Shown here: positions 436 to 63,303 of the stretch, piece after piece
Numbering within the stretch: the first letter of the stretch is position 1
Layout of the letters: each line of letters begins with the position of its first letter
Assembly: GCF_006345805.1 (NCBI RefSeq)
Contig: NC_043002.1
Coordinates: forward strand, 34,534,001 to 34,598,000
Direction: 5' to 3'
Origin: Octopus sinensis
Lineage: Eukaryota
DNA length: 64,000 bases
Notes under the pieces: generated by a model
Databases searched by the model: none
The model's input: only the letters and a program-made list of their open reading frames with translations
What the model was told of the DNA's origin: nothing
Translations under genes and position numbers: made by a program

Positions 436-527
436 GCCCGCATAGCTCAGTCGGTAGAGCATCAGACTTTTAAGAACTGCCGTGTTATGAAATCTGAGGG
501 TCGCGAGTTCAAGTCCCTCTGCGCGCG
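436..527 (+). pseudogene. tRNA-Lys(TTT) with 19-nt intron, damaged (G52A, G70C)
   Basis: Full cloverleaf with intron AGAACTGCCGTGTTATGAA after A37; mismatches in T stem and acceptor stem. Confidence 0.8.
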
Positions 528-1070
528 ACGAATTTTCTTTTGGAAATTGTCGCAGAAGAAATGTCCAATTAACTGGTTGGTTTTATATTTGCTGGATGAT
601 TTTATATTTACAGATATTTATTAGTATGTTACATTTTTTATGAGTCATATATCATATAAAAGCTCTTTCGTCCACTCTAGTGGAGTTTTCAAATTGAACT
701 TTTGCAGGAATTTTTTCTCCTTTTATAGTATTATTGAGTGTGTAGGGGCGGGGAGTGATATATGATGCTACAAGAGGGTGAAGAATGGGGAGAAAGTGAG
801 AGATAGTGAGAGAGAGAGATCGTGTGTGCTTTTGTATCTTAAAATAGTGTTAAAGAAAAAGAGAAGGAAAGGAAGAAAGAGAAAGAAGAAAAAATTTGCT
901 GATATCTTTGCAGCTGGTCAGTCTTTCAATGGTAAGTGATTCTTGGCTTTTAGAAATGGCAAACCCAGCTGGTCACTCCAAGCGGAGCAAAATGTCACTT
1001 TTCAAATAATTATCTGGATTTCTTTTTTATCATTGTCTTGTGAGAGAGAGAGAGAGAGAGAGAGAGAGTG

Positions 1071-1141
<71 letters not shown>

Positions 1142-1495
1142 TGTGCGTGTATGTGCGCGCGTGTGGGTGGGTGTCTGTGTATCAGAAAGGTATGTCCAAT
1201 GGGAAAGGGGAATGAAAGGAAGGAGGAGGAGTGAAAGAAGAAAAAATGTGTTTACAATTTTGCAACTGGTGAGTCTTTCAATCCAATGTTTGATACCTGT
1301 GCTGATATGGGATGGAGAATCTGGATGAAAGAGTGTTTTTATTTACGTATATGTACATATGTGTAGTACTGTTTGTGTGTGTGCGCGCGCGCGTGTGTGT
1401 GTGTGTGTGTGTGTTTAATACAATTTACTTTACAAAATTTGTCCTTCATCTAGTACAAAATATTATATAAACATTTTCAGCCATTTCATTTGGTG

Positions 1496-1734
1496 GAGAA
1501 CTTTGTTATGAAGTATTTTTCCATATTTCTCCTGAAGGAGGTGTCATTCTTTGGACATTTGTAGAAGGGAAAGATCTTAAATTTCTTTCTCCACGTGTAT
1601 CTGGGTATTTACTCAGTGAAACACCTAGATACATGTGGAGAAGGAAAATTTAAGATCTTTCCCTTCTACAAATGTCCAAAGAATGGCGCCTCCTTCAGGA
1701 GAAATATAGAAAAATGCTTCATAACATAGTTCTC
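1496..1734. repeat. ~240-bp near-perfect palindrome (fold-back, MITE-like), centre in flipped orientation
   Basis: GAGAACTTTGTTATGAAG...CTTCATAACATAGTTCTC; arms pair up to an 8-nt centre ACTCAGTG; GTG flanks both sides. Confidence 0.92.
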
Positions 1735-2100
1735 GTGATGCAACTGAAACAGATGAGGGCTATATTATACAAGCTGCGCACTGGGGTCGATCTATTCGAC
1801 TGGCCCACTCCACAAAAACATCGGGCCTTGTGCCTAGAGTAGAAAATATTATAATTGAAAGTGAGTAGTGTATATACATCTTGTACGACAAGTATGACTT
1901 TACCAGGATGGGACTTGATGAGTGAACGAATTACTATATTAAATATCAGTAGTAAATGTGAAGGAATTATTAGTAATCACTACGAGGTGACATAAGACTT
2001 CAGATGACGGCTTTATACAAAAATCGTTTCAGTTAACAAGGAATGTATAGCTAAGTCCAAAATATTTCATTTGTCTAAAAGTTAAACCGGACGAACGACG

Positions 2101-2114
2101 GCCCGCATAGCTCA
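2101..2114 (+). pseudogene. 5' stub of tRNA-Lys truncated by an internal deletion of the unit
   Basis: GCCCGCATAGCTCA joined directly to AGAGGGTGAAGAATGG, which lies about 330 bp further on in intact units. Confidence 0.8.
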
Positions 2115-2405
2115 AGAGGGTGAAGAATGGGGAGAAAGTGAGAGAGAGAGAGATCGTGTGTTTTTGTATCTTAAATAAGTGTTAAAGAAAAAGAGGACAC
2201 GAAGAAGAAGGAGGAAAGAAAGAAGAAACATTTACTGATATCTTTGCAGCTGGTCAGTCTTTCAATGGTAAGGGATTCTTGGCTTTTAGAAATGGCAAAC
2301 CTAGCTGGTCACTCCAAGGGGAGCAAAATGTCCCTTTTCAAAAAATTGTCTGGATTTCTTTTTTATCCTTGTCTTTTGAGAGGGAGAGAGAGTGTGTGCG
2401 TGTGT

Positions 2406-2441
<36 letters not shown>

Positions 2442-2660
2442 GGTGTCTGTGTATCTGAATAAGATGTCAAATGGGAAAGGAATGAAAGGAAGGAGGAGGA
2501 GAGAAAGAAGAAAAAAATGTGTTTACATTTTTACAACAGGTGAGTCTTTCAATAGAAAATATTTCTTGGCTTTTAGAAATGGCAAACTCAACTGACCACT
2601 TCAAGGGGGGCAAAATGTCACTTCTCAAAAAATTGTCTGGATTTCTTTTTATCATTGTTT

Positions 2661-2694
<34 letters not shown>

Positions 2695-2970
2695 TGCACA
2701 TGTATGTGTGCACATGTATGTGTGCACGTGTGTGTGTGCACATGTGTGTGTGTGTGTGCACATGTGTGTGTGGGTGCCTGTGTATCTGGAAGGGTTGTCG
2801 CTGGAGAAGGAAGATAGAAGAAAGAGAAGAAGAAGAAATAATTGTGTTGACATTTATACCACTGTATAAATCTTTCAATCCAGTGTTTGATTCCTGTGCT
2901 GATATGCGTTGGAGAATCTGGATGAAAGATTATTAATATTTATGTATATGTACATATGTGTAGAACTGTT

Positions 2971-3006
<36 letters not shown>

Positions 3007-3394
3007 TGTGTGTGCCTGTGTGTTTGTGTGTGTGTGTGTATGTGTTTAATACAGTTTACTTTACAAAATTGGTCCTTCATCTAGCACAAATTATTATAGA
3101 AATATTTTAAGCCATTTAATTTGGTGGAGAACATTGTTATGATTATAATTGAAAGAGAGTAGTGTATATACATTTTGTATGACAAGTATGACTTTACCAG
3201 GATGGGACTTGATGAGTGAACGAATTACTATATTAAATAACAGTAGTAAATGTGAAGGAATTATTAGTAATCACTACGGGGTGACATAAGATATCAGATG
3301 ACAGCTTTATACAACAATCGTTTCAGTTAACAAGGAATGTCTAGCTAAGTCCATAATATTTCATTTGTCTAAAAGTTAAACTGAACGGACGGAA

Positions 3395-3486
3395 ACCCGC
3401 ATAGCTCAGTCGGTAGAGCATCAGACTTTTTAGAACTGTCTAGTTATGAAATCTGAGGGTCGCGGGTTCAAGTCCCTCTGCGGGCG
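3395..3486 (+). pseudogene. tRNA-Lys(TTT) with 19-nt intron, G1A and A37T
   Basis: ACCCGCATAG...CAGACTTTTTAGAACTGTCTAGTTATGAAATCTGA...TGCGGGCG. Confidence 0.75.
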
Positions 3487-4694
3487 ACGATTTTTCTTTT
3501 GGAAATTGTCGCAGAAGAAATGTCCAATTGACTGGTTGGTTTTATATTTGCTGGATGGTTTTATACTTACAGATATTTATTAGTATGTTACATTTTTTAT
3601 GAATCATATATCATATAAAAGCGATTTGGTCCACTCTAGTGGAGTTTTCAAATTGAACTTTTGCAGGAATTTTGTCTCCATTTATAGCATTATTGTGTGT
3701 GTAGGGGCGGGGAGACATATAAGATACTACAAGAGGGTGAAGAATGGGGAGAACGTGAGAGAGAGAGATCATGTGTGTTTTTGTATCTTAAAGGTGTGTT
3801 AAAGAAAAAGAGAAGGAAAGGAAGAAGGAGAGAAAGAAGAAAAAATTTGTTGATATCTTTGCAGCTAGACAGTCTTTCAATGGTAAGTGAGTCTTGGCTT
3901 TTAGAAATGGCAAACTCAATTGGCCACTTCAAGGGGGACAAAATGTCACTTCTCCAAAAATTGTCTGGATTTCTTTTTGTCATTGTTTTGTGTATGTGTG
4001 TGTGTGTGTGTGTGTGCGTGTGTGTGTGCACGTGTGTGTGCACATGTGTGTGTGCACATGTGTGTGTGGGTGCCTGTGTATCTGGAAGGGTTGTCGCTGG
4101 AGAAGGAAGATAGAAGAAAGAGAAGAAGAAGAAATAATTGTGTTGACATTTATACCACTGTATAAATCTTTCAATCCAGTGTTTGATTCCTGTGCTGATA
4201 TGCGTTGGAGAATCTGGATGAAAGATTATTAATATTTATGTATATGTACATATGTGTAGTACTGTTTGTATGCATGTGTGTGTGTGTGTGTGTGTGTGTC
4301 TGTGTGTCTGTGTGTGTGTGTCTGTGTGTCTGTGTGTGTGTCTGTGTGTTTAATACAGTTTACTTTACAAAATACCTTCATCTAGTACAAATTATTATAG
4401 AAATATTTTAAGCCATTTAATTTGGTGGAGAACATTGTTATGATTATAATTGAAAGAGAGTAGTGTATATACATTTTGTATGACAGTATGACTTTACCAG
4501 GATGGGACTTGATGAGTGAACGAATTACTATATTAAATATCAGTAGTAAATGTGAAGGAATTATTAGTAATCACTACGGGGTGACATAAGATATCAGATG
4601 ACAGCTTTATACAACAATCGTTTCAGTTAACAAGGAATGTCTAGCTAAGTCCATAATATTTCATTTGTCTAAAAGTTAAACTGAACGGACGGAA

Positions 4695-4786
4695 GCCCGC
4701 ATAGCTCAGTCGGTAGAGCATCAGACTTTTTAGAACTGTCTAGTTATGAAATCTGAGGGTCGCGGGTTCAAGTCCCTCTGCGGGCG
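4695..4786 (+). tRNA. tRNA-Lys(TTT) with 19-nt intron, A37T variant
   Basis: Stems and A/B boxes match the array consensus; anticodon loop reads CTTTTT; TTTTT terminator follows. Confidence 0.6.
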
Positions 4787-5350
4787 ACACAATTTTTATC
4801 ATGCAATACCATTTCTTTTTTTTTTTTTTTTTTCTTAGTCGAACACATATTCACCCTGCAACTATTACAATTGCTTTCCCTTTTTGCTCAATCCTTTCTT
4901 GCTGCCCATCACGTTTTCTATTTCCATTAGCATTCAGTCTTTTGCTGTTTTATTCCTACCACGCTATGTCATCATCTTCGGCCACAGTCTAATGACTGAA
5001 ACAAATATATATAATAATTGTCACATGTAAATTAACTGACGGCCCTGGTAATACTGTGAAGCATGAGTATAGATCTCTGACTACAGTTTTCATCTATGAA
5101 GAAACATACATTTACATGGTACTAGATCCATTTCAGCCATCTAAAATCACACACAATGGCTCTCTTATATTATCATGTATTTTCATATATTAAACTTCGT
5201 TGCACCACTGCTGCGCATTAAGAGCAACACTATTGATTATTACATTTTAAGATATTGTATTATTAGTGCCAGAAAACAAGATATTTATATAGATAGATGT
5301 CCTTTGGTAAAAAATGAAAATCTTAAATATCAAATGGGATTAAATAATCA

Positions 5351-5388
5351 GAGGGATTTGAACCCGCGACCCTCAGATTTCATCTGAG
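5351..5388 (-). pseudogene. Antisense 3'-half tRNA (B-box) cassette with CTCAGAT/ATCTGAG hairpin junction
   Basis: GAGGGATTTGAACCCGCGACCCTCAGATTTCATCTGAG followed by (TATG)n and then the sense tRNA. Confidence 0.85.
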
Positions 5389-5507
5389 TATTGTTTGTGT
5401 ATGTATGTATGTATGTATGTATGTATGTATGTATGTATGTACGTAGGTATATAGTAGCTAAGTTCAAAAGATTTAATCTATCTAAATTTTCGTTGTTTTG
5501 TGTGTCA

Positions 5508-5599
5508 GCCCGCATAGCTCAGTCGGTAGAGCATCAGACATTTAAGAACTACCGTGTTGTGAAATCTGAGGGTCGCGGGTTCAAGTCCCTCTGCGGGCG
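5508..5599 (+). pseudogene. tRNA-Lys(TTT) with intron, U33A variant
   Basis: CAGACATTTAAGAACTACCGTGTTGTGAAATCTGA; the invariant U33 is lost. Confidence 0.7.
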
Positions 5600-6500
5600 A
5601 CGATTTTTCTTTTGGAAATTATTGCAGAAGAAATGTCCAATTGACTTGTTGGTTTTATATTTACAGATATTTATAAGTATGTTACATTTGTTATGAATCA
5701 TATATCATATAAAAGCGCATTCGTCCACTCTAGTGGAGTTTTCAAATTGAACTTTTGCAAGAATTTTCTCTCCTTTTATAGTATTATTGAGTGTGTAGGG
5801 GCGGGGAGAGATATGTGATTCTACAAGAGGGTGAAGAATGGGGAGAAAGTGAGAGAGAGAGAGAGAGAGGGAAAGAGAGAGAGAGAGATCGTGTGTGTTT
5901 GTGTATCTTAAAGTAGTGTTAAAGAAAAATAGAAGGAAAGGGAGAAGAAGGAGAGAAAGAAGAAAAAATTTGCTGATATCTTTTCAGCTGGTCAGTCTTT
6001 AAATGGTAAGTGATTATTGGCTTTTAAAAATGGCAAACCCAGCTGGTCACTCCAAGGGGAGCAAAATGTCACTTTTCAAATAATTAACTGGATTTCTTTT
6101 TTATCATTGTCTTCTGAGAGAGAGAGAGAGGGTGCGCGGGCGCGCGCGCATATGTGTGTGTGTGTGTGCGTGTATGTGCGCGTGTGTGTGGGTGTCTGTG
6201 TATCTGAAAAGTGTGTCAAATGGGAAAGGGGAATGAAAGGAAGGAGAAGGAGGGAAAGAAAAAAAATGCGTTTACATTTTTGCAACTGGTGAGGCTTTCA
6301 ATCCAATGTTTGATACCTGTGCTGATATGGGTTGGAGAACCTGGATGAAAGAGTGATTTTCTTTACGTATATGTACATATGTGTAGTACTGTTTGTGTGT
6401 ATGTGTGTGTGTGTGTGTGTTTAATACAATTTACTTTACAAATTTGGTCCTTCATCTAGTACAAATATTATAGAAATATTTTCAGTCATTTAATTTGGTG

Positions 6501-6740
6501 GAGAACTTTGTTATGAAGTATTTTTCCATATTTCTCCTAAAGGAGGTGTCATTCTTTGGACATTTGTAGAAGGGAAAGATCTTAAATTTTCCTTCTCCAC
6601 ATGTTTCTAGGTGTTTCGCTGAGTAAATACCCAGATACATGTGGAGAAGGAAAATTTAAGATCTTTCCCTTCTACAAATGTCCAAAGAATGACACCTCCT
6701 TCAGGAGAAATATGGAAAAATACTTCATAACATAGTTCTC
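6501..6740. repeat. 240-bp palindrome copy
   Basis: Same arms as 1496-1734; centre CGCTGAGT. Confidence 0.92.
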
Positions 6741-6876
6741 GTGTTGCAACTGAAATAACTGATGGCTATATTAAACCAGCTGCGTACTGGAGTCGATCTA
6801 TTCGACTGGCCCCCTCCTTGTTGGAAACCTGTCAATTGGTTATTTCTTCTGGACCAATTTCCAAAAGAAAACTCGT

Positions 6877-6916
6877 CGCCCCCAGAAGGATTTGAACCCG
6901 CGACCCTCAGATTTCA
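6877..6916 (-). pseudogene. Antisense 3'-half tRNA-Lys cassette
   Basis: CGCCCCCAGAAGGATTTGAACCCGCGACCCTCAGATTTCA, with the tRNA 3' trailer on its left. Confidence 0.85.
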
Positions 6917-7101
6917 TCTGAGTATTGTTTGTGTATGTATGTATGTATGTATGTATGTATGTATGTATGTATGTATGTATGTTTGTATGCATGTATGTAT
7001 GTATATATGTAGATATGCTTGTGTGCATGTATGTACGTAGGTATATATTAGCTAAGTTCAAAAGATCTAATCTATCTAAATTTTCGTTGAATCGCATGTC
7101 A

Positions 7102-7190
7102 GCCGCATAGCTCAGTCGGTAGAGCATCAGACTTTAAGAACTGCGTGTTATGAAATCTGAGGGTCGCGGGTTCAAGTCCCTCTGCGGGCG
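7102..7190 (+). pseudogene. tRNA-Lys copy with three 1-nt deletions (possibly sequencing error)
   Basis: GCCGCATAG, GACTTTAAG and CTGCGTG each lack one base of a run; the surrounding unit shows similar homopolymer losses. Confidence 0.6.
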
Positions 7191-7455
7191 ACGATTTTTC
7201 TTTTGGAAATTGTCCAAGAAGAAAATGCCCAATTGACTGATTGGTTTATATTTGCTGGATGGTTTTATATTTACAGATATTTATTAGTATGTTACATTTT
7301 TTATGAATCATATATCATATAAAAGCGCTTTGGTCCACTCTAGTGGAGTTTTCAAATTGAACTTTTGCAGGAATTTGTCTCCTTTTATAGTATATTGAGT
7401 GTGTAGGGGGGGGAGAGATTTTAAGATACTACAAGAGGGTGAAGAATGGGGAGAA

Positions 7456-7496
<41 letters not shown>

Positions 7497-7732
7497 GTGT
7501 GTGTTTTTGTATCTTAAATAAGTTTTAAAGAAAAGAGAGGAAAGGAAGAAGAAGGAGAGAAAGAAAGAAAAAATTTGCTGATATCTTTGCAGCTGGTCAG
7601 TCTTTCAATGGTAAGTGATTATTGGCTTTTAGAAATGGCAAACCCAGTTGGTCACTCCAAGGGGAGCAAAATGTCACTTTTCAAAAAATGGTCTTGATTT
7701 CTTTTTTTATCATTGTCTTGTGTGAGAGAGAG

Positions 7733-7773
<41 letters not shown>

Positions 7774-8099
7774 GTGTGGGTGTCTGTGTATCTGAAAGGA
7801 AGTGTCAAATGGGAAAGGGAATGAAAGGAAGGAGGAGGAGGAGGGAAAGAAGAAAAAATGTGTTTACATTTTTGCAACTGGTGAGTCTTTCAATCCAATG
7901 TTTGATACCTGTGCTGATATGGGTTGGAGAATCTGGATGAAAGAGTGTTTTTATTTATTTATATGTACATATGTGTAGTACTGTTTGTGTGCATATGTGT
8001 GTGTGTGTGTGTGTGTGTTTAATACAATTTACTTTACAAATTTGGTCCTTCATCTAGTACAAAATATTATAGAAACATTTTTAGCCATTTAATTTGGTG

Positions 8100-8338
8100 T
8101 AGAACTTTGTTATGAAGTATTTTTCCATATTTCTCCTGAAGGAGGTGTCATTCTTTGGACATTTGTAGAAGGGAAAGATCTTAAATTTTCCTTCTCCACA
8201 TGTTTCTAGGTGTTTCACTGAGTAAATACCCAGATACATGTGGAAAAGGAAAATTTAAGATCTTTCCTTCTACAAATGTCCAAAGAGTGACACCTCCTTC
8301 AGGAGAAATATGGAAAAATACTTCATAACATAGTTCTC
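8100..8338. repeat. 240-bp palindrome copy
   Basis: Same arms; centre CACTGAGT. Confidence 0.9.
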
Positions 8339-8608
8339 GTGATGCAACTGAAACAGATGAGGACTATGTTATACCCATTTCTTTATTACCCACAATGGGC
8401 TAAACACCTGCGCACTGGGGTCGATCTATTCGACTGGCCCCCTCTACAGAAATGTCGGGCCTTGTGCCTCGAGTAGAAATGTAACCATTGCAATGTAACC
8501 ATTGCAAGTAGTATTGTATGTATGTATGTTTGTATATATGTACGTATGTATATAGTAGATAGGTTCAAAAGATTTAATCTATCTAACTTTTCGCTGAAAC
8601 GCTTGACA

Positions 8609-8699
8609 GCCCGTATAGCTCAGTCGGTAGAGGATCAGACTTTTAAGAACTTTAGATTGATGAAATCTGAGGGACGCAGGTTAAGTACCTCTGCGGGCG
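8609..8699 (+). pseudogene. Degenerate tRNA-Lys pseudogene
   Basis: Multiple substitutions; B box destroyed (GCAGGTTAAGTACC). Confidence 0.85.
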
Positions 8700-9213
8700 A
8701 CGACTTCTCTTTTCGAAAATGACCTTGAAGAAATACCCAATTAACTGTTTTCAGATGTGAGAACTTAAAATTCTTGAATTGAATTCATTAGGTGTGGAAA
8801 CAAGTGTAAGCAGGAATTCGAATTTCTTTCAATAAGACATTCTGTACATCATTTTTTTCTATCATCTTTCTATCTATATTATACCACCTGCGCACTGGGG
8901 TCGAACTATTCGACTGGCCCCTCCACAAAAATGTCGGGCCTTGTGCCTAGAGTAGAAAAGATTATAATTGAAAGTGAGTAGTGTATATACATTTTGAATG
9001 ACCAATATGACTTTACCAGGATGGCACTTGATGAGTGAACGAATTGCTATATTAAATACCAGTAGTTAATGTGAAGGAATTATTAGTAATCACTACGGTG
9101 TGACATAAGATATCAGATGACAGCTCTATGCAACAATCGTTTCAGTTAACAAGGAATGTCTAGCTAAGTCCATAATATTTCAGTTGCCTAAAAGTTAAAC
9201 TGGACGAGAGGAA

Positions 9214-9304
9214 GCCCCATAGCTCAGTCGGTAGAGCATCAGACTTTTAAGAACTGTCGTGTTATGAAATCTGAGGGTCGAGGGTTCAAGTCCCTCTGCG
9301 GGTG
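9214..9304 (+). pseudogene. tRNA-Lys with intron, G5 deleted, C72T, A50 (paired T stem)
   Basis: GCCCCATAGC...GAGGGTTCAAGTCCCTCTGCGGGTG. Confidence 0.75.
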
Positions 9305-9906
9305 ACATATTATTTTCTTGCAATACCATTTTTTTTTCTCGTAGTCGAACACATTTTCACCCGGCAACTGTTACAATTGCTTTCCCTTTTTGCTCAATCC
9401 TTTCTTGCTGCCCATCACGTTTTCCAGCTTGGCAATGTCCTTCCGGTCTTTCGAAATATTTTTACGCTCTTCTATTTCCCTTAGCATTCAGTCTTTTGCT
9501 CTTTTATTCCTACCACGCTATGTCATCATCTTCGGCCACAGTCTAATTACTGAAACAAGTAAAATTTAATCATTGTCACAAGTAAATTAACTGACGGTCC
9601 TGGTAATTCTGTGAAGCATGAGTATAGATCTCTGACTACAGTTTTCATCTATAAAGAAACATACATTTACATGGTACTAGATCCATTTCAGCCATCTAAA
9701 ATCACACACAATGGCTCCTCTTATATTATCATGTATTTTCATATATTAAACTTCGTTGCACCACTGCTGCGCATTAAGAGCAACACTATTGATTATTACA
9801 TTTTAAGATATTGTAATATTAGTGCCAGAAAACAAGATATTTATATAGATAGATGTCCTTTGGTAAAAAATGAAAATCTTAAATAATCAATGGGATTAAA
9901 TAATCA

Positions 9907-9944
9907 GAGGGATTTGAACCCGCGACCCTCAGATTTCATCTGAG
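9907..9944 (-). pseudogene. Antisense 3'-half tRNA cassette
   Basis: Same sequence as 5351-5388. Confidence 0.85.
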
Positions 9945-10079
9945 TATTGTTTGTGTGTGTATGTATGTATGTATGTTTGTATGTATGTATGTATGTATGT
10001 ATGTATGTATGTACGTATGTATATAGTAGCTAAGTTCAAAAGATTTAATCTATCTAAATTTTCGTTGTTTTGTGTGTCA

Positions 10080-10172
10080 GCCCGCAAAGCTCAGTCGGGT
10101 AGAGCATCAGACTTTTAAGAACTACCGTGTTATGAAATCTGAGGGTCGCGGGTTCAAGTCCCTCTGCGGGCG
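10080..10172 (+). pseudogene. tRNA-Lys with intron, U8A and extra G in the D loop
   Basis: GCCCGCAAAGCTCAGTCGGGTAGAGC; A box altered. Confidence 0.7.
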
Positions 10173-10696
10173 ACGTTTTTTCTTTTGGAAATTGTTGCAG
10201 AAGAAATTTCCAATTGACTGGTTGGTTTTATATTTACAGATATTTATAAGTATGTTACATTTGTTATGAATCATATATCATATAAAAGCGCTTTCGTCCA
10301 CTCTAGTGGAGTTTTCAAATTGAACTTTTGCAAGAATTTTGTCTCCATTTATAGTATTATTGAGTGTGTAGGGGCGGGGAGAGATATGTGATTCTACAAG
10401 AGGGTGAAGAATGTGGAGAAAGTGAGAGAGAGAGATAGAGAGAGAGAGATCGTGTGTGTTTTTGTATCTTAAAGTAGTGTTAAAGAAAAATAGAAGGAAA
10501 GGGAGAAGAAGAAGAGAAAGAAAGAAGAAAAAATTTGCTGATATCTTTGCAGCTGGTCAGTCTTTCAATGGTAAGTGATTATTGGCTTTTAAAAATGGCA
10601 AACCCAGCTGGTCACTCCAAGGGGAGCAAAATGTCACTTTTCAAATAATTATCTGGATTTCTTTTTTATCATTGTCTTCTGAGAGAGAGAGAGAGG

Positions 10697-10746
<50 letters not shown>

Positions 10747-10970
10747 ATGTGCGCGTGTGTGTGGGTGTCTGTGTATCTGAAAAGTGTGTCAAATTGGAAA
10801 GGGGAATGAAAGGAAGGAGTAGGAGGGAAAGAAAAAAAAATGTGTTTACATTTTTGCAACTGGTGTGGCTTTCAATCCAATGGTTGATACCTGTGCTGAT
10901 ATGGGTTGGGGAACCTGGATGAAAGAGTGATTTTCTTTACGTATATGTACATATGTGTAGTACTTTTTGT

Positions 10971-11016
<46 letters not shown>

Positions 11017-11095
11017 AATACAATTTACTTTACAAAATTGGTCCTTCATCTAGTATAAATTATTATAGAAATATTTTCAGCCATTTAATTTGGTG

Positions 11096-11335
11096 GAGAA
11101 CTTTGTTACGAAGTATAGTTCCATATTTCTCCTAAAGGAGGTGTCATTCTTTGGACATTTGTAGAAGGGAAAGATCTTAAATTTTCCTTCTCCACATGTT
11201 TCTAGGTGTTTCGCTGAGTAAATACCCAGATACATGTGGAGAAGGAAAATTTAAGAACTTTCCCTTCTACAAATGTCCAAAGAATGACACCTCCTTCAGG
11301 AGAAATATGGAAAAATTCTTCATAACATAGTTCTC
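11096..11335. repeat. 240-bp palindrome copy
   Basis: Same arms; centre CGCTGAGT. Confidence 0.9.
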
Positions 11336-11471
11336 GTGTTGCAACTGAAATAACTGATGGCTATATTAAACCACCTGCGTACTGGAGTCGATCAATTCGA
11401 CTGGCCCCCTCCTTGTTTGAAACCTGTCAATTGGTTATTTCTTCTGGACCAATTTCCAAAAGAAAACTCGT

Positions 11472-11511
11472 TGCCCCCAGAAGGATTTGAACCCGCGACC
11501 CTCAGATTTCA
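11472..11511 (-). pseudogene. Antisense 3'-half tRNA-Lys cassette
   Basis: TGCCCCCAGAAGGATTTGAACCCGCGACCCTCAGATTTCA. Confidence 0.85.
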
Positions 11512-11676
11512 TCTGAGTATTGTTTGTGTATGTATGTATGTATGTATGTATGTATGTATGTATGAATGTATGTATGTATATATGTATGTATGCTTGTGTG
11601 TATGTATGTACGTAGGTATATATTAGCTAAGTTCAAAAGATTTAATCTATCTAAATTTTGGTTGAATCGCATGTCA

Positions 11677-11768
11677 GCCCGCATAGCTCAGTCGGTAGAG
11701 CATCAGACTTTTAAGAACTGTCGTGTTATGAAATCTGAGGGTCGCGGGTTCAAGTCCCTCTGCGGGCG
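11677..11768 (+). tRNA. tRNA-Lys(TTT), intact array consensus, 19-nt intron after A37
   Basis: Acceptor GCCCGCA/TGCGGGC, D stem GCTC/GAGC, anticodon stem TCAGA/TCTGA, loop CTTTTA|A, T loop TTCAAGT, G73, TTTTT terminator. Confidence 0.88.
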
Positions 11769-12287
11769 ACGATTTTTCTTTTGGAAATTGTCCAAGAAGA
11801 AATGCCCAATTGACTGATTGGTTTAATATTTGCTGGATGGTTTTATATTTACAGATATTTATTAGTATGTTACATTTTTTATGAATCATATATCATATAA
11901 AAGCGCTTTGGTCCACTCTAGTGGAGTTTTCAAATTGAACTTTTGCAGGAATTTTGTCTCCTTTTATAGTATTATTGAGTGTGTAGGGGCGGGGGGAGAT
12001 TTTAAGATACTACAAGAGGGTGAAGAATGGGGAGAAAGTGAGAGAAAGAGAGAGAGAGAGAGAGATCGTGTGTGTTTTTGTATCTTAAATAAGTTTTAAA
12101 GAAAAAGAGAAGGTAAGGAAGAAGAAGGAGAGAAAGAAGAAAAAATTTGCTGATATCTTTGCAGCTGGTCAGTCTTTCAATGGTAAGTGATTATTGGCTT
12201 TTAAAAATGGCAAACCCAGCTGGTCACTCCAAGGGAACAAAATGTCACTTTTCAAAAAATTGTCTTGATTTCTTTTTTATCATTGTC

Positions 12288-12371
<84 letters not shown>

Positions 12372-12589
12372 GTGTGGGTGTCTGTGTATCTGAAAGGAAT
12401 GTCAAATGGGAAAGGGAATGAAAGAAAGGAGGAGGAGGAGGGAAAGAAGAAAAAAATGTGTTTACATTTTTGCAACTGGTGAGTCTTTCAATCCAATGTT
12501 TGATACCTGTGCTGATATGGGTTGGAGAATCTGGATGAAAGAGTGTTTTTATTTATTTATATGTACATATGTGTAGTACTGTTTGTGTG

Positions 12590-12644
<55 letters not shown>

Positions 12645-12646: not shown

Positions 12647-12746
12647 NNNNNNNNNNNNNNNNNNNNNNNNNNNNNNNNNNNNNNNNNNNNNNNNNNNNNN
12701 NNNNNNNNNNNNNNNNNNNNNNNNNNNNNNNNNNNNNNNNNNNNNN
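12647..12746. other. Scaffold gap (100 N)
   Basis: Run of N. Confidence 1.
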
Positions 12747-13693
12747 AATCAAATCAAAATAGACAAAATAGATGAACATCAATGGAATTTGTATCTTGTG
12801 GTACCAGTGCCTGTGGCACACAAGAAATCCATCAGTGCTGTAGTCAGTGCGGTGGGCACATGACAAACACCATCCGATCGTGGCCGTTCGCCAGCCTCAT
12901 CTAGCACCTGTGTCGGTGGCACATAAATACACCATCCGAAGACCCGGCAAGACTAGTCAGGCCATACCCATGGCCCCTACCTGGGACGTAGTCAGTCCAC
13001 CTGTGCATACCTTCCTTCTTGTGACACTTGTGAAGACCTGTTGAGGCAAGTGAAAATCAAACAAATCAAAATAGATGAACATCAATGGAATTTGTATCTT
13101 TGTGGTACCAGTGCCGGTGGCACGTGGCACATAAGAAAACCATCCGAACGTGGCCGTAGCCAGTACCCCGCATCGACTGGCCTCCGTGCTGTGGGCACGT
13201 AACAAGCACCATCCGATCGTGGCCGTTTGCCAGCCTCATCTGGCACCTGTGTCGGTGGCACATAAAAACACCATCCGAGCGTGGCCGTCTGCCAGCCTTG
13301 TCTGGCACCTGTGTCGGTGGCACATAAAAACACCATCCGAGCGTGGCCGTCTGCCAGCCTCGTCTGGCACCTGTGTCGGTGGCACATAAAAAACACCATC
13401 CGAGCGTGCCCGTCTGCCAGCCTCGTCTGGCACCTGTGTCGGTGGCACATAAAAAACACCATCCGAGCGTGGCCGTTTGCCAGCCTCGTCTGGCACCTGT
13501 GTCGGTGGCACATAAAATCACCCACTACACTCTCGGAGTGGTTGGCGTTAGGAAGGGCATCCAGCTGTAGAAACACTGCCAGATCTGACTGGACTGGTGC
13601 AGCTTTCGGGCTCCCCAGACCCCAGTTGAACCGTCCAACCCATGCTAGCATGGAAAGCGGACGTTAAATGATGATGATGATGATGATGATGAT
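12747..13693 (+). mobile_element. SINE-like element with (GAT)n tail and expanded internal 62-63 bp tandem repeat
   Basis: GTGGTTGGCGTTAGGAAGGGCATCCAGCTGTAGAAAC core, 3' GCATGGAAAGCGGACGTTAAA(TGA)n; five internal units at 13194-13506. Confidence 0.85.
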
Positions 13694-15469: not shown

Positions 15470-16255
15470 TATCATCATCATCATCATCATCGTTTAGCGT
15501 CCGTTTTCCATGCTAGCATGGGTTGGACGGTTCTACTGGGGTCTGTGAAGCCAGAAGGCTTCATCAGGCCCAGTCAAATCTGGCAGTGTTTCTACGGCTG
15601 GATGCCCTTCCTAACGCCAACCACTCCGAGAGTGTAGTGGGTGCTTTTTACGTGCCACCCGCACAGGTGCCAGACAGAGCTGGCAAACGGCCACGAACGG
15701 ATGGTGCTTTTTATGTGCCACCGGCACGAGGGCCAGGCGAGGCTGGCAACGGCCACGAAACGGGGCGGTGCTGGCAACGGTCGCGAAACGGAAGGTTCTC
15801 TTACATGCCACCGGCACTGGTAACACATTTGCAATTTCCATTGATCGATTTCGATTCTGATCCTCACTTGCCTCAACGGGTCTTCACAAGTAGAGTTTCG
15901 ACATGCCACCGGCACTGGTAACACATCTGCAATTTCCATTGATCGATTTCGATTCTGATCCTCACTTGCCTCAACAGGTCTTCACAAGTAGAGTTTTGTG
16001 TCCCAAGAAGGGAAGGTATGCATACGTAGGCTGGCTCCATCCCATGTAGAAGGCCACGGGTTATGGACTCACTTGTCCTGCCGGGTCTTCTCGCGCACAG
16101 CACACTTCCAGAGGACTCGGTCTCTAGTCATTTCCTCAGTGAGACCTAAAGTTCGAAGGTCGTGCTTCACCACCTCGTCCCAGGTTTTCCTGGGTCTGCC
16201 TCTTCCACAGGTTCCCTCAACTGCTAGGGTGTGGCACTTTTTCACACAACTATCT
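15470..16255 (-). mobile_element. (GAT)n-tail SINE, long copy with internal duplication
   Basis: Family core; internal direct repeat at about 15800-15895 and 15900-15992. Confidence 0.8.
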
Positions 16256-25175: not shown

Positions 25176-26453
25176 TTGGGTCATCCCATACATGTGGTTT
25201 TTTAATACTTCTTTCATTTTTCAAAATTAAGATAAACAAAGTTCTTTTTTAATCTAAAATATACGCTCTTCCATTTTCTACAATGCTCTTCCATCTATCT
25301 GGTTGACTCACAAAGCCCCTCTTCCAAAATTCACTTGTCCGTGACAAAAAATACTCCTCCAGTACTGTTCTGACCTCGTCTACAGAATTCATATTTTTTC
25401 CATCCAAATGATTTTGATGATTGCCAAATAAATGATAATCAGATAGGGTAATGTCCAGTGAATATGGTAGGTGGGGTATTGTTTCCCATTCAAACTGCCC
25501 CAGCCTTTGGAATGTCATCCTTGCTGTAAGTGACCGAGCATTATTCTGATGGAAGAATACCTTTTGTCTTGAAACTAAAGATAGTTGTTTTTCTTCTAGT
25601 GCTAACTTAAGCCACTCAAGCTGCTGGCAGTAGATCTCCTTTGTTATCATTTAGTTTGGGTTTAAAAGTTCAAATTGGACTAAACCTTTTCATATCCCAC
25701 CAAACAAATAACAGCACTTTACATGGGTGAAGACTTTCTTTAGCCTGGTGTGTCAGTGTTACTCTTTTCCCTACCGACTGTCTTCAGTACTTGACATTTT
25801 TATAGAGAACCCATTTCTCGTCACCAGTCACTATTCAGTCTGAAAAAGCTTCATTTGTGAGACATGACAGCAAAGAAGAGCACACATTCACTCTCTGTGC
25901 ATGATTAGACTAGGAAAGTTTGTGGGGAACCTATTGACCCATTTTGCTGACTTTTCTGTTAACACACAGGTGTTGGTGAATGATTGAATGACCAAACCTA
26001 AGCTTCTCTGCTAGTTCTTCAACAGTTATGATGGAATTTTGTTCCACCAGGGTTTGCATGTCATCCTCATTGAGCTCTACAGATCTTCCAAGATGAAGCT
26101 TGTCTTCTAAACTGTAGTTTCTGGCTTGGAATTTCTGGAACCACTGTTGACACTGGCTTACATTTATTGTCTGATCCCCATATATTGCATTAATATTCCC
26201 CGCACTTACCATTACGTTGTTGCCTTTAATGAACTCATAAATAAAAATATGCCGAATATGCTCCTTTGTCACTTCCATTATAACTTTGAAAGAACAACTG
26301 TTAAAATCGAACTGCTTTCTTCAAAACTTGCACTAAGAATAAAGTAAAATTAATGCCTGCTTTTATAGCAAGTTGATACAGGTAGTTTATCCCATCTGCA
26401 TCTGACTTAGTTCATGCAATTGAAAAAATCGCATTAATTATGGGATGACCCAA
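25176..26453 (-). mobile_element. Full-length decayed mariner (Tc1/mariner) transposon
   Basis: TIRs TTGGGTCATCCCATA / TATGGGATGACCCAA with TA on both sides. N-terminal ORF 25931-26278 (MEVTKEHIRH...WFQKF) and C-terminal ORF 25249-25650 (HQNNAR...HLPYSLDITLSDYHLF); catalytic D to N change and a broken frame. Confidence 0.9.
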
Positions 26454-28017: not shown

Positions 28018-31000
28018 ACTTTTTCACTTCCCGAGCGTTATACTAATACATCTGTTTGTTGTCTACATCACCTGTCTTTGTCTTTTGTTTTTTTTTTTGT
28101 GAAACCCCACTACAATTTCTATAGAACTAGATTTTACAGATTCTTATTGTATCACTCATCATGATGTTTGATATAAGGTTTTGTATTTTATAATGGAAAA
28201 GAAGCTAATGCAATTGTATGTCTTAAGAAATATGTGGTGAGTCATCACTACATTGGCAAATATTATGAAGGATGTATTTTATTAATGAAGTCTTAATGCT
28301 GGCTTACTCTGTGCTTGACTAATAGATAAATTAATATTTTGTTTATTGATTAATTAGTGATTCTCTGATTCTACTTCAGTATGTATGGTGAAATCTATGT
28401 AGATTTCATAGCAGAATAGACTCTGTAGAAATCTAATGAAGGTTCTGACTTTTGTAACAATAATCCACCTGTTATTGAAATAGTCACATACAGTGGGGGG
28501 TGGGGTGGGGACAAAAATAGTGAGCATCCATTAATTTTTATCATCGCTTTTTTACCCATTTTCTATGCTGACATATTAGATGGGTTTTCATGTTTGAGTT
28601 CAATATGTCTTTAGGGGTACTGCTCCTCTAAATGAGTTGTGGGGACACCATCTTGCTTGGTTTCCACCACTCTCCTTCTTAACCCTTTCGTTACTGTATT
28701 TATTTTGAGATGCTCTGTGTTTCTTCCAATTATTTTAAATATAACAAAGAATTTAGTAAAATAACATCGTTATCATTAAGCTAGTGTTAGGAACATAAAT
28801 TGTGTCTAAGATTTAGTGGAAGATTTGAATTCAAAACTTATGAAAACAAGACATTTATACTAAAGAGCCAGAGCCAGTTTCAGCTGGCTTGGTAACAAAA
28901 GGGTTAATATCAACCACTTTACCAAGTGAACTGAGTTCTTGTTTGATGACACTAGTACTAGAGAAATATTGTGTTCATGGTAAGACACAACCTCACACTT
29001 AACAGAGTGTACTGGTTGAGTTTTTTGTCACATCAGCAATAGAGAGGTAACTGTGTCCTTGACATGACTAAAGGGTCCTTACAACCACATATCTCTGCTC
29101 ATTTGCCTGCCTCTTTACAGAGTGAGAAGCATGAGTAATAGAGACGAGAATGATAGTGATGAGAGGAATGTGTAATAGGGAAAGGAATGGTAAGAGTACA
29201 CAGTATTCTGAAATAGAGACATATATTCAGGCATCTTAACATAGATGGTAGAGAGATGACAGAAGTTTATGTAATCAAGGAGACAAAGCGATGACAAAGA
29301 CTAGATGTGTGGAAGAAAAAGAGAGTATGATAGCTGACAGAGTGAAATAGGGTGATGACAGGCATGATGACAGGAGGGGAGGGTGAAGTTAGAGGGTACT
29401 GGGCAATCAAGATTCAGTGTAGTCATCTACACATAGGCCTTCAAGATAGGTTGAAGGGGTTGAGTGATGAGAGTGGTGGCAAGGAGAATGGAAAGTATAT
29501 GGGTCTTGTACCAGTTAACTGCACAAAGGAGTGTCTGTGATGGAGAGTCAGACTAGGTGCAGTGGCATCCTTAGTTACCCTGGAAGCAATGTGAGCCACT
29601 CTCAGTTACACCGAAGGCAAAATTCAGTGAGACCCAAGAAGACAAAGAATTAAGAAATGAGGGATTGAGGTATGGGTGAAAGAATGCAATGTATGATGAA
29701 AGGAAGAGAGATCCACTGCTACTTTAGGTCACAACAACTTAGTACAGTGAGATCAAGAAATGACTTATAGGGACTTACGCTCAGGAAGCAAGAAAGATAA
29801 AGTCATGGACAAAAGGGATCTGGGTAACAGTGGTGTGGGCAATATACAGATGAGTGATAGGCTTGTGAGATAGAGGAATGAGCAACAAAGGCAGTGAGTA
29901 AGGATACAAGTGTTGGAGGATTGAGAGGCCATCAAATAAGTCAGTGATGTAAATTTGATAATACGCAAATATATATATATACATGCATGCATATGTGCAC
30001 ACACATGAATACATATGCCTAGTGATACATGCCTTTATATAAGATAATTTTAATATTCATTTTGCCAATCCTCCTTCCATACAGTAACTCAGTCCTTTAC
30101 TATTAGAAACAACAGCTTTAGATCTGTCTTTGTTACTTTGTTCCCCACAAAATACAATATAAAATATGAAGAAAACGTGCCATCAGCGGACGTTAAACGA
30201 TGATGATGATGATGATGATGAAGAAAATATGTAATTTCTTAACTCACCAGCTGTTTCAGGATGCCCAGTGTTATGTAATAATCATAATCATAATTTGCAG
30301 ATGAAATGTGCAAAAAGACATGAGTATGTAACCAGTAACCAGTCACATGAAGATACTACAATAAGTCTGGCTCCCCTCATCAAGTGAATATAGGAAAATA
30401 TCATCATCATCATTTAGCATCCGCTTTCCATGCTAGCATGAGTTGGACGGTTCGACTGGGGTCTGGGAAGCCAGGTGGCTGCACCAGGCCCAGTCTGATC
30501 TGGCAATGTTTCTACGGCTGGATGCCCTTCCTAACGCCAACCACTCCGTGAGTGTAGTGGGTGCTTTTTACGTGCCACCGGCACAGGTGCCAGACGGGGC
30601 TGGCAAACAGCCACGGTTGGATGGTGCCTTTTACATGCTACCGGCACGGGGGCCTGGCGAGGCTGGCAACGGCCACGATCGGATGGTGCTTTTTATGTGC
30701 CATATTAATATAATATAGTTGATAAATATGATAATATTTTCCATGCTAAATGAATTATTCTTCCAATAGATGTGATTCTACAGAAGATATTTTGACCTTT
30801 AAGTCATGAAACAGTTTAGTTGTATGCTAATGTAAATGTTTTGTTAAATCTACATTTTTAACTACTCACTTATATCTTATACTGTTTCTTTATTATTTCA
30901 GAACATCAGATGACATCAGATTTAAAGAATTTTTAACCTTAGGTACACTGTCATTAGTTATCATATTTTGAAGACTAATGGAAGAAACTACATGCAGCTG

Positions 31001-31372: not shown

Positions 31373-31533
31373 ATGTCTCTAAAAAGAAACCTAACTACTG
31401 GAGAGAAGCCATATCACCGTGATATCTGTGGTAAATCATTTTTGAATGGAAGTCACTTAATTAGACACAAACACATTGATACAAGTGAGAAACCATATCG
31501 TTGTGATATTTGCAATAAATCATTTTCTAATGA
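31373..31533 (+). pseudogene. Upstream degenerate zinc-finger segment, out of frame with the main ORF
   Basis: ATG at 31373: [55 protein letters not shown], then a 1-nt deletion near 31536. In-frame TAG at 31352 upstream. Confidence 0.75.
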
Positions 31534-50861: not shown

Positions 50862-50955
50862 TGCCCGCAGAGGGACTCGAACCCCCGACCCTCAGATAAC
50901 TTAACTGCTTCCTTTCATTAAAAGTCTGATGCTCTACCGACTGAGCTATGCAGGC
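50862..50955 (-). tRNA. Divergent tRNA-Lys(TTT) with a different 21-nt intron
   Basis: Intron ATGAAAGGAAGCAGTTAAGTT after A37; U4.G69 and G50.U64 wobbles; T loop TTCGAGT; A73. Confidence 0.75.
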
Positions 50956-51730
50956 TTCCGACCTTCCGCTTTAACTTTTAGACAAATGAAATATTTTGGA
51001 CTCAGCTACACATTCCTTGTTAACTGAAACGATTGTTGCATAGAGCTGTCATCTGATATCTTACGTCACCCCGTAGTGATTACTAATAATTCCTTCACAT
51101 TTACTGCTGATATTTAATATAGTAATTCGTTCACTCATCAAGTCCCATCCTGGTAAAGTCATATTGGTCATTCAAAATGTATATACACTACTCTCTTTCA
51201 ATTATAATCCTTTCTACTCTAGGCACAAGGCCCGACATTGACAAAGTTACACTGAGTCTTAAAAATTCCCTTCGGTCACGAATGACCAAGAAAGTTCCTC
51301 TCCGAGTCGCAAGTCCGGGCAAGGTTGTTTGTCGAATACCAGTCAGTCCTTTCCACAACGCTGATGTTGTCCAAGAAAACGACAAAGGCCGATTCAGTTT
51401 GGCAACAGTAATGTCGCAAATTATTTCTACTGCTAAGTGAACTGGAGCAATATGAAATGAAGTGTCTTGCTCAGAAACACAACTCATAGTCCGGTCTAGG
51501 AATCGAACTTACAACATCACGATTGTAAGCCCAATGTTCTAACCACTGAGCCATGCATCTTCACAAAAAGGTCATCGTAAAGCCACAACGGAGAATCGAA
51601 CTTTGTATCTCTCAAATTATCTTGAAAACACCTAATAATTTAACATCTAATGTTAAAGTGGAAAAATTATCAGAACATTTTTCTATTCAGTTTTGCAAAT
51701 ATAGAATACTGTACGATTGACTATTTGTTT

Positions 51731-51763
<33 letters not shown>

Positions 51764-52498: not shown

Positions 52499-52568
<70 letters not shown>

Positions 52569-52760
52569 GAGAAAAAGAAGAAAAAGAAAAAAATGACGTA
52601 CAGAAGTTGATTATTCATAGAAATTTAAATTCATGCAGAGAAATTCCTGCATACAGCTGTTTCCACACCTAATCAATTGAATTATGGAAATGTAAATTCC
52701 AATCTTTGAAACCAGTTAATTGGATATTTCTTCATGGACAACTTCCAAAAGAAACTTCGT

Positions 52761-52852
52761 CGCCTGCAGAGGGACTTGAACCCGCGACCCTCAGATTTCA
52801 TAACTCGACAGTTCTTAAAAGTCTGATGCTCTACCGACTGAGCTATGCGGGC
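52761..52852 (-). tRNA. tRNA-Lys(TTT) with intron, G69A acceptor mismatch
   Basis: Single substitution relative to the exon consensus. Confidence 0.6.
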
Positions 52853-53277: not shown

Positions 53278-53517
53278 GAAAACTATGTTATGAAGTATTT
53301 TTCCATATTTCTCCTGAAGGAGGTGTCATTTTTTGGACATTTGTAGAAGGGAAAGATCTTAAATTTTCCTTCTCCACATGTATCTGGGTATTTACTCAGT
53401 GAAACACCTAGAAACATGTGGAGAAGGAAAATTTAAGATCTTTCCCTTCTACAAATGTCCAAAGAATGACACCTCCTTCAGGAGAAATATGGAACAATAC
53501 TTCATAACAAAGTTCTC
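53278..53517. repeat. 240-bp palindrome copy
   Basis: Same arms. Confidence 0.9.
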
Positions 53518-53595: not shown

Positions 53596-53656
<61 letters not shown>

Positions 53657-53872: not shown

Positions 53873-53951
<79 letters not shown>

Positions 53952-54488: not shown

Positions 54489-54580
54489 CGCCCGCAGAGG
54501 GACTTGAACCCGCGACCCTCAGATTTCATTACACGGCAGTTCTTAAAAGTCTGATGCTCTACCGACTGAGCTATGCGGGC
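54489..54580 (-). tRNA. tRNA-Lys(TTT), intact, 19-nt intron
   Basis: Consensus exons; intron AGAACTGCCGTGTAATGAA; TTTT terminator. Confidence 0.88.
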
Positions 54581-55822: not shown

Positions 55823-55914
55823 CGCCCGCAGAGGGACTTGAACCCGCGACCCTCAGATTTCATAACACGGCAGTTCTTAAAAGTCTGATGCTCTACCGAC
55901 TGAGCTATGCGGGC
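55823..55914 (-). tRNA. tRNA-Lys(TTT), intact, 19-nt intron
   Basis: Consensus exons; intron AGAACTGCCGTGTTATGAA; TTTT terminator. Confidence 0.88.
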
Positions 55915-56441: not shown

Positions 56442-56533
56442 CGCCCGCAGAGGGACTTGAACCAGCGACCCTCAGATTTCATAACTGGACAGTTCTTAAA
56501 AGTCTGATGCTCTACCGACTGAGCTATGCGGGT
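56442..56533 (-). pseudogene. tRNA-Lys with G1A and G51T
   Basis: Acceptor and T-stem mismatches. Confidence 0.75.
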
Positions 56534-57047: not shown

Positions 57048-57138
57048 TGCCCACAGATGGACTTAAACCTGCGTCCCTCAGATTTCACCACTCGAAATGC
57101 TTAAATGTCTGATGCTCTACCGACTGAGCTATGCGGGC
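57048..57138 (-). pseudogene. Degenerate tRNA-Lys pseudogene (paralogue of 8609)
   Basis: Shares GGGACGCAGGTT with the 8609 copy; anticodon altered. Confidence 0.85.
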
Positions 57139-57532: not shown

Positions 57533-57624
57533 CGCCCGCAGAGGGACTTGAACCCGCGACCCTCAGATTTCATAACACGGCAGTTCTTAAAAGTCTGATG
57601 CTCTACCGACTGAGCTATGCGGGC
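57533..57624 (-). tRNA. tRNA-Lys(TTT), intact, 19-nt intron
   Basis: Consensus exons; TTTT downstream. Confidence 0.86.
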
Positions 57625-62052: not shown

Positions 62053-62144
62053 CGCCCGCAGAGGGACTTGGACCCGCGACCCTCAGATTTCATAACGCGG
62101 CAGTTCTTAAAAGTCTGATGCTCTACCGACTGAGCTATGCGGGG
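62053..62144 (-). pseudogene. tRNA-Lys with G1C and U55C
   Basis: B box GGTCCAAG; acceptor mismatch. Confidence 0.78.
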
Positions 62145-63211: not shown

Positions 63212-63303
63212 CGCCCGCAGAGGGATTTGAACCCGCGACCCTCAGATTTCATAACCCGGCAGTTCTTAAAAGTCTGATGCTCTACCGACTGAGCTATGCG
63301 GGC
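63212..63303 (-). tRNA. tRNA-Lys(TTT), intact, 19-nt intron
   Basis: Consensus exons (T loop TTCAAAT); intron AGAACTGCCGGGTTATGAA; TTTTTTT terminator. Confidence 0.86.

Follow-up and report, generated by a model that had tools for sequence, protein, structure and literature searches.

Two facing clusters of intron-bearing tRNA-Lys(UUU) genes

The stretch of Octopus sinensis DNA analysed here (the window; 64,000 nt of contig NC_043002.1, GC ~37%) contains 18 matches to the Rfam tRNA family RF00005, which extend over model positions 1-71 and score 31.7-63.1 bits, all above the gathering score of 29 bits. BLAST with one copy as query recovered these 18 at full length, along with a 14-nt 5' stub and seven inverted fragments of the 3' half. 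Thus the original prediction that the window carries 18 full-length tRNA-Lys(UUU) genes, each with an insert of 18-21 nt, was borne out. It had placed all 18 copies between 436 and 11768, a range that covers only nine of them (all on the plus strand); the other nine lie at 50862-63303 on the minus strand. The two clusters point towards each other, 38 kb apart, and both probably extend past the window. Local amplification of a tRNA-Lys(UUU) family in an animal genome, as had been proposed, is supported.

The anticodon loop reads C32 U33 U34 U35 U36 A37 (standard numbering), which gives the anticodon UUU, and the spliced consensus is a 73-nt normal cytosolic tRNA-Lys(UUU), identical at 68 of 73 positions to the sequence that we take to be human tRNA-Lys3. 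The consensus and the six best copies have kept intact A and B boxes (assigned by inspection), and a run of at least four T occurs 4-11 nt downstream of the gene in 18/18 copies. Automatic annotation with ARAGORN found 13 of the 18 copies and labelled ten of them tRNA-Stop(tta), one tRNA-Ile(aat) and two Lys(ttt), while five were missed; the Stop and Ile labels arose because the intron was placed one base off. A suppressor tRNA, as the label tRNA-Stop(tta) would imply, was ruled out: with the Rfam alignment and a 7-nt loop, positions 34-36 read UUU, and the product is Lys-like. Automatic calls of this kind could thus list such Lys genes wrongly as suppressor tRNAs.

Every copy reads ...CAGACTTTTA, insert, ATCTGAGGG..., with the insert following position 37, and the sole insertion in the RF00005 alignment lies at 37/38 in all copies (19-22 nt). 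Most inserts (15 copies) are 19 nt long; those of 7102 and 57048 have 18 nt and that of 50862 has 21 nt (copies are named by their first coordinate). An A occupies position 37, the first intron base and position 38 alike, so the junction is ambiguous by one base from the DNA. The claim that the intron sits exactly between positions 37 and 38 therefore holds in that the canonical placement is possible in 18/18 copies, but this A run keeps the DNA alone from proving the junction. According to the literature, the determinants used by the TSEN endonuclease are the 37/38 position and the anticodon-intron pair (PMC10485636). The third-last intron base was expected to be G in every copy, and it is G in 18/18; the C32:G(-3) anticodon-intron pair is likewise possible throughout, C32 being invariant. 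Moreover, two unrelated intron sequences, the main type and that of 50862, occupy the same site, both with G(-3). By the published position and pair rules, the intron looks spliceable.

The main window intron is AGAACTGTCGT-GTTATGAA. Among the 15 main-type copies, none of the 10 minimal changes lies outside positions 7-15, in agreement with the predicted clustering of substitutions in the middle of the intron, while positions 1-6 (AGAACT) and 16-19 (TGAA) are constant (p ~0.006, allowing for window placement). The predicted variants CTGCCGT, CTGTCGT, CTGTCTA, CTACCGT and CTGCCGG were all found in the window.

We consider it likely, at a probability of roughly 75%, that the two clusters are nuclear tRNA-Lys(UUU) genes of the RNA polymerase III (Pol III) type which carry a canonical TSEN-type intron and were amplified as duplicated DNA units. 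In such a scheme, whose processing steps are taken from established tRNA biology, Pol III would transcribe each intact copy from the internal A box TAGCTCAGTCGG and B box GGTTCAAGTCC and terminate at the T run that follows the gene by 4-11 nt, and a conserved A/T-rich block at about -28 may aid transcription. RNase P and RNase Z would trim the ends of the transcript; TSEN would measure from the mature body, use the C32:G(-3) pair and excise the 19-nt (or 21-nt) intron; and an RtcB-type ligase would join the halves into the 73-nt tRNA-Lys(UUU). The clusters themselves would have grown by unequal crossing-over and segmental duplication of two kinds of unit, A and B, which share an old upstream block.

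Organisation and growth of the clusters

When the copies were aligned together with 300 bp of flank, the units fell into these two types, whose flanks are unalignable from -18 to -1 and past the terminator (Table 1). The upstream block common to A and B units ends in the sequence TCTAAA, which is possibly a TATA-like Pol III upstream element. Three units are hybrids: 3395 has a B-type upstream and an A-type downstream flank, 52761 a B-type upstream and an A'-type downstream flank, and 50862 a B-type upstream flank before a different gene body. Such mixed combinations of flank and body point to crossovers inside the tRNA gene. Gene bodies that served as recombination or gene-conversion points would account both for the hybrid units and for identical genes in unrelated flanks.

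Unit-to-unit identity is 82-96% over hundreds of bp of flank, and the largest repeated block measures ~3.2 kb (4916-8018 versus 9470-12616, 93.6% identity). A 100-N assembly gap lies at 12647-12746, just beyond the inner end of the left tRNA cluster. Gene-to-gene spacing ranges from 485 to 4520 bp, with six neighbour pairs at 485-867 bp and the others at 1.2-4.5 kb; thus six pairs lie within the 1000 nt that define a homogeneous cluster of tRNA genes (tDNAs) for one isoacceptor (PMC2888827), all 18 being Lys(UUU). Tandem Repeats Finder reported no array with the period of a gene unit in the window (the longest period that it covers being 500 bp). With such irregular spacing, two flank types plus recombinants and no gene-unit array, the term satellite-like used in the original prediction does not fit. 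As judged from the alignments, the clusters are the product of irregular segmental duplication with recombination within gene bodies, and of neither satellite expansion nor retroposition.

An inverted partial copy, which carries the end of the intron, the 3' exon, the terminator and part of the downstream flank, lies upstream of the A-type gene with (TGTA)n between them, in seven of the eight A-type units (it is absent at 55823). A short palindrome (CTCAGAT GAA ATCTGAG) marks the start of the inverted fragment and hints at a fold-back duplication at the anticodon stem.

The repeat-rich character of the window, the Helitron-like helicase fragment within the right cluster and the tRNA-Lys-related short interspersed nuclear elements (SINEs) known in cephalopods would fit another origin, in which the copies are not genes at all and are instead the heads of a tRNA-Lys-derived mobile element, either a SINE or a fragment carried by a Helitron. 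We regard this as hardly credible. Retroposed SINE heads lack both an intron and a Pol III terminator directly after the tRNA part, whereas the copies are full-length and have kept both; no tRNA-unrelated body or A-rich tail follows them; they are limited to the two clusters, with none in the intervening 38 kb; and the duplicated units include hundreds of bp on both sides. The SINE and mobile-element reading was accordingly rejected on the terminator, the retained intron, the confinement to two clusters and the long shared flanks.

Amplified tDNAs are familiar in animals, the 3.18-kb tDNA repeat of Xenopus being one further array. Homogeneous, pseudogene-rich tDNA clusters with rapid turnover are common in animal genomes (PMC2888827). 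Like those of zebrafish, stickleback and Nematostella, the clusters in the window represent one amplified isoacceptor, in mostly parallel orientation within a block and with many pseudogenes (PMC2888827); they differ in their irregular spacing, in having two unit types plus recombinants, in forming facing blocks 38 kb apart and in the intron carried by every copy. As a genome feature, then, the locus is an ordinary fast-evolving tDNA cluster full of decaying duplicates.

Table 1. Positions of the tRNA-Lys(UUU) copies and of other features in the window
Feature	Position	Strand	Description
tRNA-Lys(UUU)	436..527	+	A-type flanks; 19-nt intron; G52A and G70C break two stem pairs; probably impaired
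tRNA-Lys(UUU) copy	3395..3486	+	recombinant unit (B upstream, A downstream); 19-nt intron; G1A, A37U; likely pseudogene
tRNA-Lys(UUU) copy	4695..4786	+	B-type flanks; 19-nt intron; A37U; likely impaired
tRNA-Lys(UUU) copy	5508..5599	+	A-type flanks; 19-nt intron; U33A (invariant U-turn base); likely pseudogene
Degenerate copy, 89 nt	7102..7190	+	acceptor-stem C, anticodon-loop U and one intron C lost (intron 18 nt); pseudogene
Divergent copy, A' unit	8609..8699	+	six exon changes, one of them a T-loop deletion; pseudogene, with the lowest Rfam score (31.7 bits)
tRNA-Lys(UUU) copy	9213..9304	+	B-type flanks; 19-nt intron; 5' acceptor strand AGCCCCA disrupted; C50A, C72U; pseudogene
tRNA-Lys(UUU) copy	10080..10172	+	A-type flanks; 19-nt intron; U8A and an additional D-loop G; likely impaired
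Intact tRNA-Lys(UUU)	11677..11768	+	consensus exons; 19-nt intron AGAACTGTCGTGTTATGAA; T5 terminator at +5
Type C tRNA-Lys(UUU)	50862..50955	-	B-type upstream flank, different body; 21-nt intron ATGAAAGGAAGCAGTTAAGTT, unrelated to the others; highest Rfam score (63.1 bits)
tRNA-Lys(UUU) copy	52761..52852	-	B upstream, A' downstream; 19-nt intron; G69A gives a C4-A69 mismatch; marginal
Intact gene	54489..54580	-	consensus exons; A-type flanks; 19-nt intron
Intact gene	55823..55914	-	consensus exons and consensus intron; A-type flanks
tRNA-Lys(UUU) copy	56442..56533	-	B-type flanks; G1A, G51U; likely impaired
Divergent A' copy	57048..57138	-	18-nt intron; U33A; six 3'-exon changes; pseudogene
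Intact gene	57533..57624	-	B-type flanks; 92/92 identical to 55823
tRNA-Lys(UUU) copy	62053..62144	-	A-type flanks; G1C, U55C; likely impaired
Near-intact gene	63212..63303	-	B-type flanks; sole exon change G59A, in the T loop
Upstream block common to A and B units	11624..11655	+	about -53 to -22; consensus TAGCTAAGTYCAWAAKATTTMAWYTRTCTAAA; ends in A/T-rich TCTAAA at about -28 to -23
Inverted partial copy	11421..11512	-	last intron bases, 3' exon, terminator and ~50 nt of downstream flank; complement of 11728-11819 (92 nt, 87%); equivalents at 350-388, 5349-5383, 6877-6917, 9905-9939, 54713-54747 and 62302-62342
C2H2 zinc-finger array	31396-32931	+	~18 fingers, 84-bp period
Mariner/Tc1-type transposase open reading frame	34464-35207	+	
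Mariner-like open reading frame pair	25249-26278	-	judged by eye; Pfam matched nothing on the one tested
Pif1-type (Helitron-like) helicase fragment	59534-60043	-	within the 4.5 kb that separate 57533 from 62053

Decay, constraint and folding of the copies

Consensus-identical exons are found in four copies (11677, 54489, 55823 and 57533) rather than in the five that had been reported: 63212 departs from the consensus by one base, and 50862 is intact as a different variant. The body of the latter (type C) has U4 (in a wobble pair with G69), G50 (which leaves the T stem fully paired), G57 and A73. About six of the 18 copies look usable, and the remainder look like decaying duplicates.

Exons are less variable than flanks, as had been expected. 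In the A units (8 copies) the variable sites amount to 5/71 in the exons, 4/18 in the intron and 85/247 in the flanks, and in the B units (5 copies) to 6/72, 3/19 and 67/434 respectively; combined, they are 11/143, 7/37 and 152/681. The contrast between exons and flanks was significant overall (Fisher p = 2.6e-5) and in the A units (p = 2e-6). Exons are thus 2-5 times less variable than flanks, while the middle of the intron varies like flank and its ends are invariant. Copy 55823, with A flanks, matches copy 57533, with B flanks, at each of the 92 nt, so that even the intron, variable elsewhere, is the same in both, although their adjoining flanks are unalignable; such identity despite unrelated flanks argues for gene conversion rather than for selection on the intron.

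Several observations weigh against spliced, functional genes: i) 12/18 copies carry lesions at invariant or paired positions, namely U33A (two copies), A37U (two), G1A or G1C (three), broken stem pairs and single-base deletions or insertions, with 8609 and 57048 heavily diverged; ii) the consensus T stem (GCGGG/CCCTC) contains a C50-U64 mismatch; iii) in the B units alone the exon-flank contrast has p = 0.15; iv) gene conversion alone could yield this contrast without selection; v) in the folded anticodon-intron arm of the main type, the canonical form (a lone C32:G pair plus a 3-nt bulge) has +0.1 kcal/mol versus -7.1 kcal/mol for an alternative; vi) that alternative hides the 3' splice site in a continuous helix, U33-A37 pairing with UGAA and A38.

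Most of these would be expected if the arrays were dead, that is, if an intron-bearing Lys(UUU) gene had been caught in a duplicating segment and all its copies were silent or useless, with the working genes elsewhere; the damaged copies, the T-stem mismatch, the non-canonical fold of the main intron and the non-significant contrast in the B units all agree with it, as does the report that tDNA clusters turn over nearly as unconstrained DNA (PMC2888827). Against it stand the four exon-identical copies (two of them identical in the intron too), which lie in units whose flanks are 4-18% different or unalignable, the T-run terminator in 18/18 copies, the A and B boxes kept in the intact copies and the significantly lower variability of exons than of flanks overall. 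The C50-U64 mismatch also occurs in independent organisms, and we did not count it as damage because the same GCGGG/CCCTC stem recurs in the independent environmental contigs L054, L067, L068 and L071 (see below). A wholly dead array is therefore unlikely in our estimate. The opposite view, a selected family as originally proposed, is overstated, since 12/18 copies are lesioned and the 92/92 identity fits gene conversion at least as well. Our own reading is one of partial constraint together with concerted evolution, most duplicates probably being in decay.

The two intron types differ in how their arms are predicted to fold. For type C (50862) the minimum-free-energy fold puts the 3' splice site in a 3-nt bulge, and the fold with the C32:G pair enforced lies <1 kcal/mol from the minimum. 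For the main type, the preference for one unbroken, extended helix in which the 3' splice site is not bulged is a real caveat to the predicted splicing, and the U-rich Lys loop may itself invite the alternative fold. This fold would suit a transcript in which the insert is retained, either as a tRNA-like RNA whose anticodon arm is enlarged and which serves in another role, or as an RNA that is degraded. Such an outcome is very improbable: position, length and G(-3) fit the TSEN rules in every copy and in 70/70 independent Lys(UUU) introns; conserved intron ends with a drifting middle are the pattern expected of a spliced intron; and the same GAA tail ends introns of some other organisms (group G4 and part of group G1 of the environmental contigs).

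Lys(UUU) introns elsewhere and other features of the window

The nearest known counterpart by isoacceptor is budding-yeast tK(UUU), which likewise has a short intron after position 37 and is an expected TSEN substrate. Its intron, at 23 nt, is slightly longer than that of the window, its exons are quite different and its genes are dispersed, without local clusters. The ligation step differs too, yeast using heal-and-seal by Trl1 and animals RtcB (PMC12168002, PMC10485636). The animal introns of Tyr-GUA, Ile-UAU, Leu-CAA and Arg-UCU resemble those of the window in position, anticodon-intron pair, similar length and presumed processing by TSEN and RtcB, and belong to other isoacceptors. These four are listed as the intron-rich animal tRNAs, and in a survey of GtRNAdb animals they alone (plus Met-CAU) were named one by one, with Lys-UUU pooled among 'other tRNAs' (PMC12168002). 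If the intact copies are expressed, part of the AAA-decoding tRNA would be made via splicing, and lysine would be added to the isoacceptors that depend on TSEN and RtcB. To our knowledge model animals do not splice a lysine tRNA, and we know of no intron-dependent modification of Lys(UUU).

The original prediction had called the family lineage-specific. In a search of a protein database with the translated tRNA gene, five spurious open reading frames (ORFs) proved to be other intron-bearing Lys(UUU) genes, some of them in tandem tRNA arrays; the window's own intron was not found in that search. Metagenome contigs were then scanned with the pattern AGAGCATCAGACTTTTA-N12-40-ATCTGAGGGTCG, which yielded 91 intron-containing Lys(UUU) genes on 78 contigs. 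Together with three assembly contigs, these provided 70 distinct introns of 14-30 nt, with G(-3) in 70/70. The environmental genes share with the window the intron at 37/38 and the G(-3), identity at the exon ends having been required by the search pattern. None of these contigs carries the window's exons, and their acceptor and T stems differ, which marks the contigs as coming from other organisms. Thus many eukaryotic and giant-virus-like contigs, some of the 78 being metazoan-looking, have introns that agree with those of the window in position, size range and G(-3), and the claim of lineage specificity is not supported. The feature is unusual against model animals and, from these contigs, clearly not unique to this genome. 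Such environmental matches suggest that Lys(UUU) introns may be common beyond model species, in which case the textbook list would reflect the choice of species and not biology. No report of a Lys(UUU) intron in any animal, molluscs included, emerged from literature searches; on tRNAs, the genome paper of Octopus minor states only that tRNAscan-SE was run.

The animal-like contigs fall into groups G1-G4, which have exons of the form GCCCGG[C/T]TAGC..., G73 and T-run terminators. Group G2 carries an ORF with LRRNT and leucine-rich-repeat domains, a U3 small nucleolar RNA gene and further tRNA genes, group G1, whose sample codes may denote host-associated material of gutless annelid worms, gave a weak match to an endonuclease of the LINE (long interspersed nuclear element) type, and group G4 shares with the window the C50-U64 T stem. 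The giant-virus-like contigs are AT-rich and gene-dense, and two of them (L013 and L016) encode topoisomerase IA and a MutS-domain protein. L013, L016, L025, L030 and L043 carry tRNA-Lys(UUU) genes with introns of 17-24 nt at 37/38 and with G(-3). By gene content and composition these five look like giant viruses, whose tRNA genes would need the splicing machinery of the host.

Sequence is shared within the introns as well. The intron of L061 (group G1), AGAACTGTCGT-TGCAGAC, has its first 11 nt in common with the main window intron, a length reached by 3/2000 shuffles, and an opening AGRACTG or AGGCTG recurs across G1-G4. The intron of 50862 and that of the Lys(UUU) gene on L030 (Ga0209634_1000294), whose exons are different, have a 13-mer in common (GAAGCAGTTAAGT; 0/2000 shuffles reach 13), of which only the TAAGT tail is accounted for, by anticodon-loop pairing. 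An endogenous giant-virus origin of 50862 was ruled out: its exons differ from the main type at four positions only, and its upstream flank is of the local B type.

The invariant intron ends, the recurring AGRACUG opening with the 11-nt sharing and the 13-mer shared with a giant-virus-like contig led us to consider a bolder proposal: that the Lys(UUU) intron is old and sequence-constrained, shared among a number of animal lineages, with a mirror image in the tRNA genes of giant viruses, and not a neutral passenger. We hold this to be doubtful. If it were true that all Lys(UUU) genes carry the intron, AAA decoding would depend on TSEN; and the intron might direct a modification of the anticodon loop, as in Tyr, Ile-UAU and Leu-CAA.

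Two eukaryotic contigs from ENA assemblies, L004 and L005, contain tight tandem tRNA arrays with periods of ~400 and ~870 bp that include intron-bearing Lys(UUU) genes; on L004 these are joined by a Tyr(GUA) gene, which likewise has an intron, and by one more tRNA gene. Across contigs of 41-59% GC the Lys exons are identical.

Within the 38 kb between the clusters lie an array of C2H2 zinc fingers, ORFs of mariner-like type, repeats resembling SINEs and one gap of 100 N. The repeat of the zinc-finger array runs from 31396 but its open frame only from 31624, which may mean that the gene is interrupted or has exons further upstream; a protein search with this ORF was dominated by vertebrate zinc-finger proteins. 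An exact look-up of the Helitron ORF in the right cluster gave no match. A SINE-like repeat with the 25-mer CCCATGCTAGCATGGAAAGCGGACG occurs at 11 sites with at most 3 mismatches (none expected), including 13639-13663, and is associated with 63-bp tandem arrays at 13194-13517, 15640-15759 and 30560-30702. We presume that this motif belongs to an abundant octopus SINE; a literature search for a 22-mer of the SINE found nothing. An octopod genome would also agree with the GC content, the zinc-finger array and the fragments of mariner and Helitron elements. Contigs L001 and L002, which hold mariner relatives, contain no tRNA genes. The protein search with the mariner-like ORF gave transposon matches only, the best named one being a mantis shrimp protein at 86% identity.

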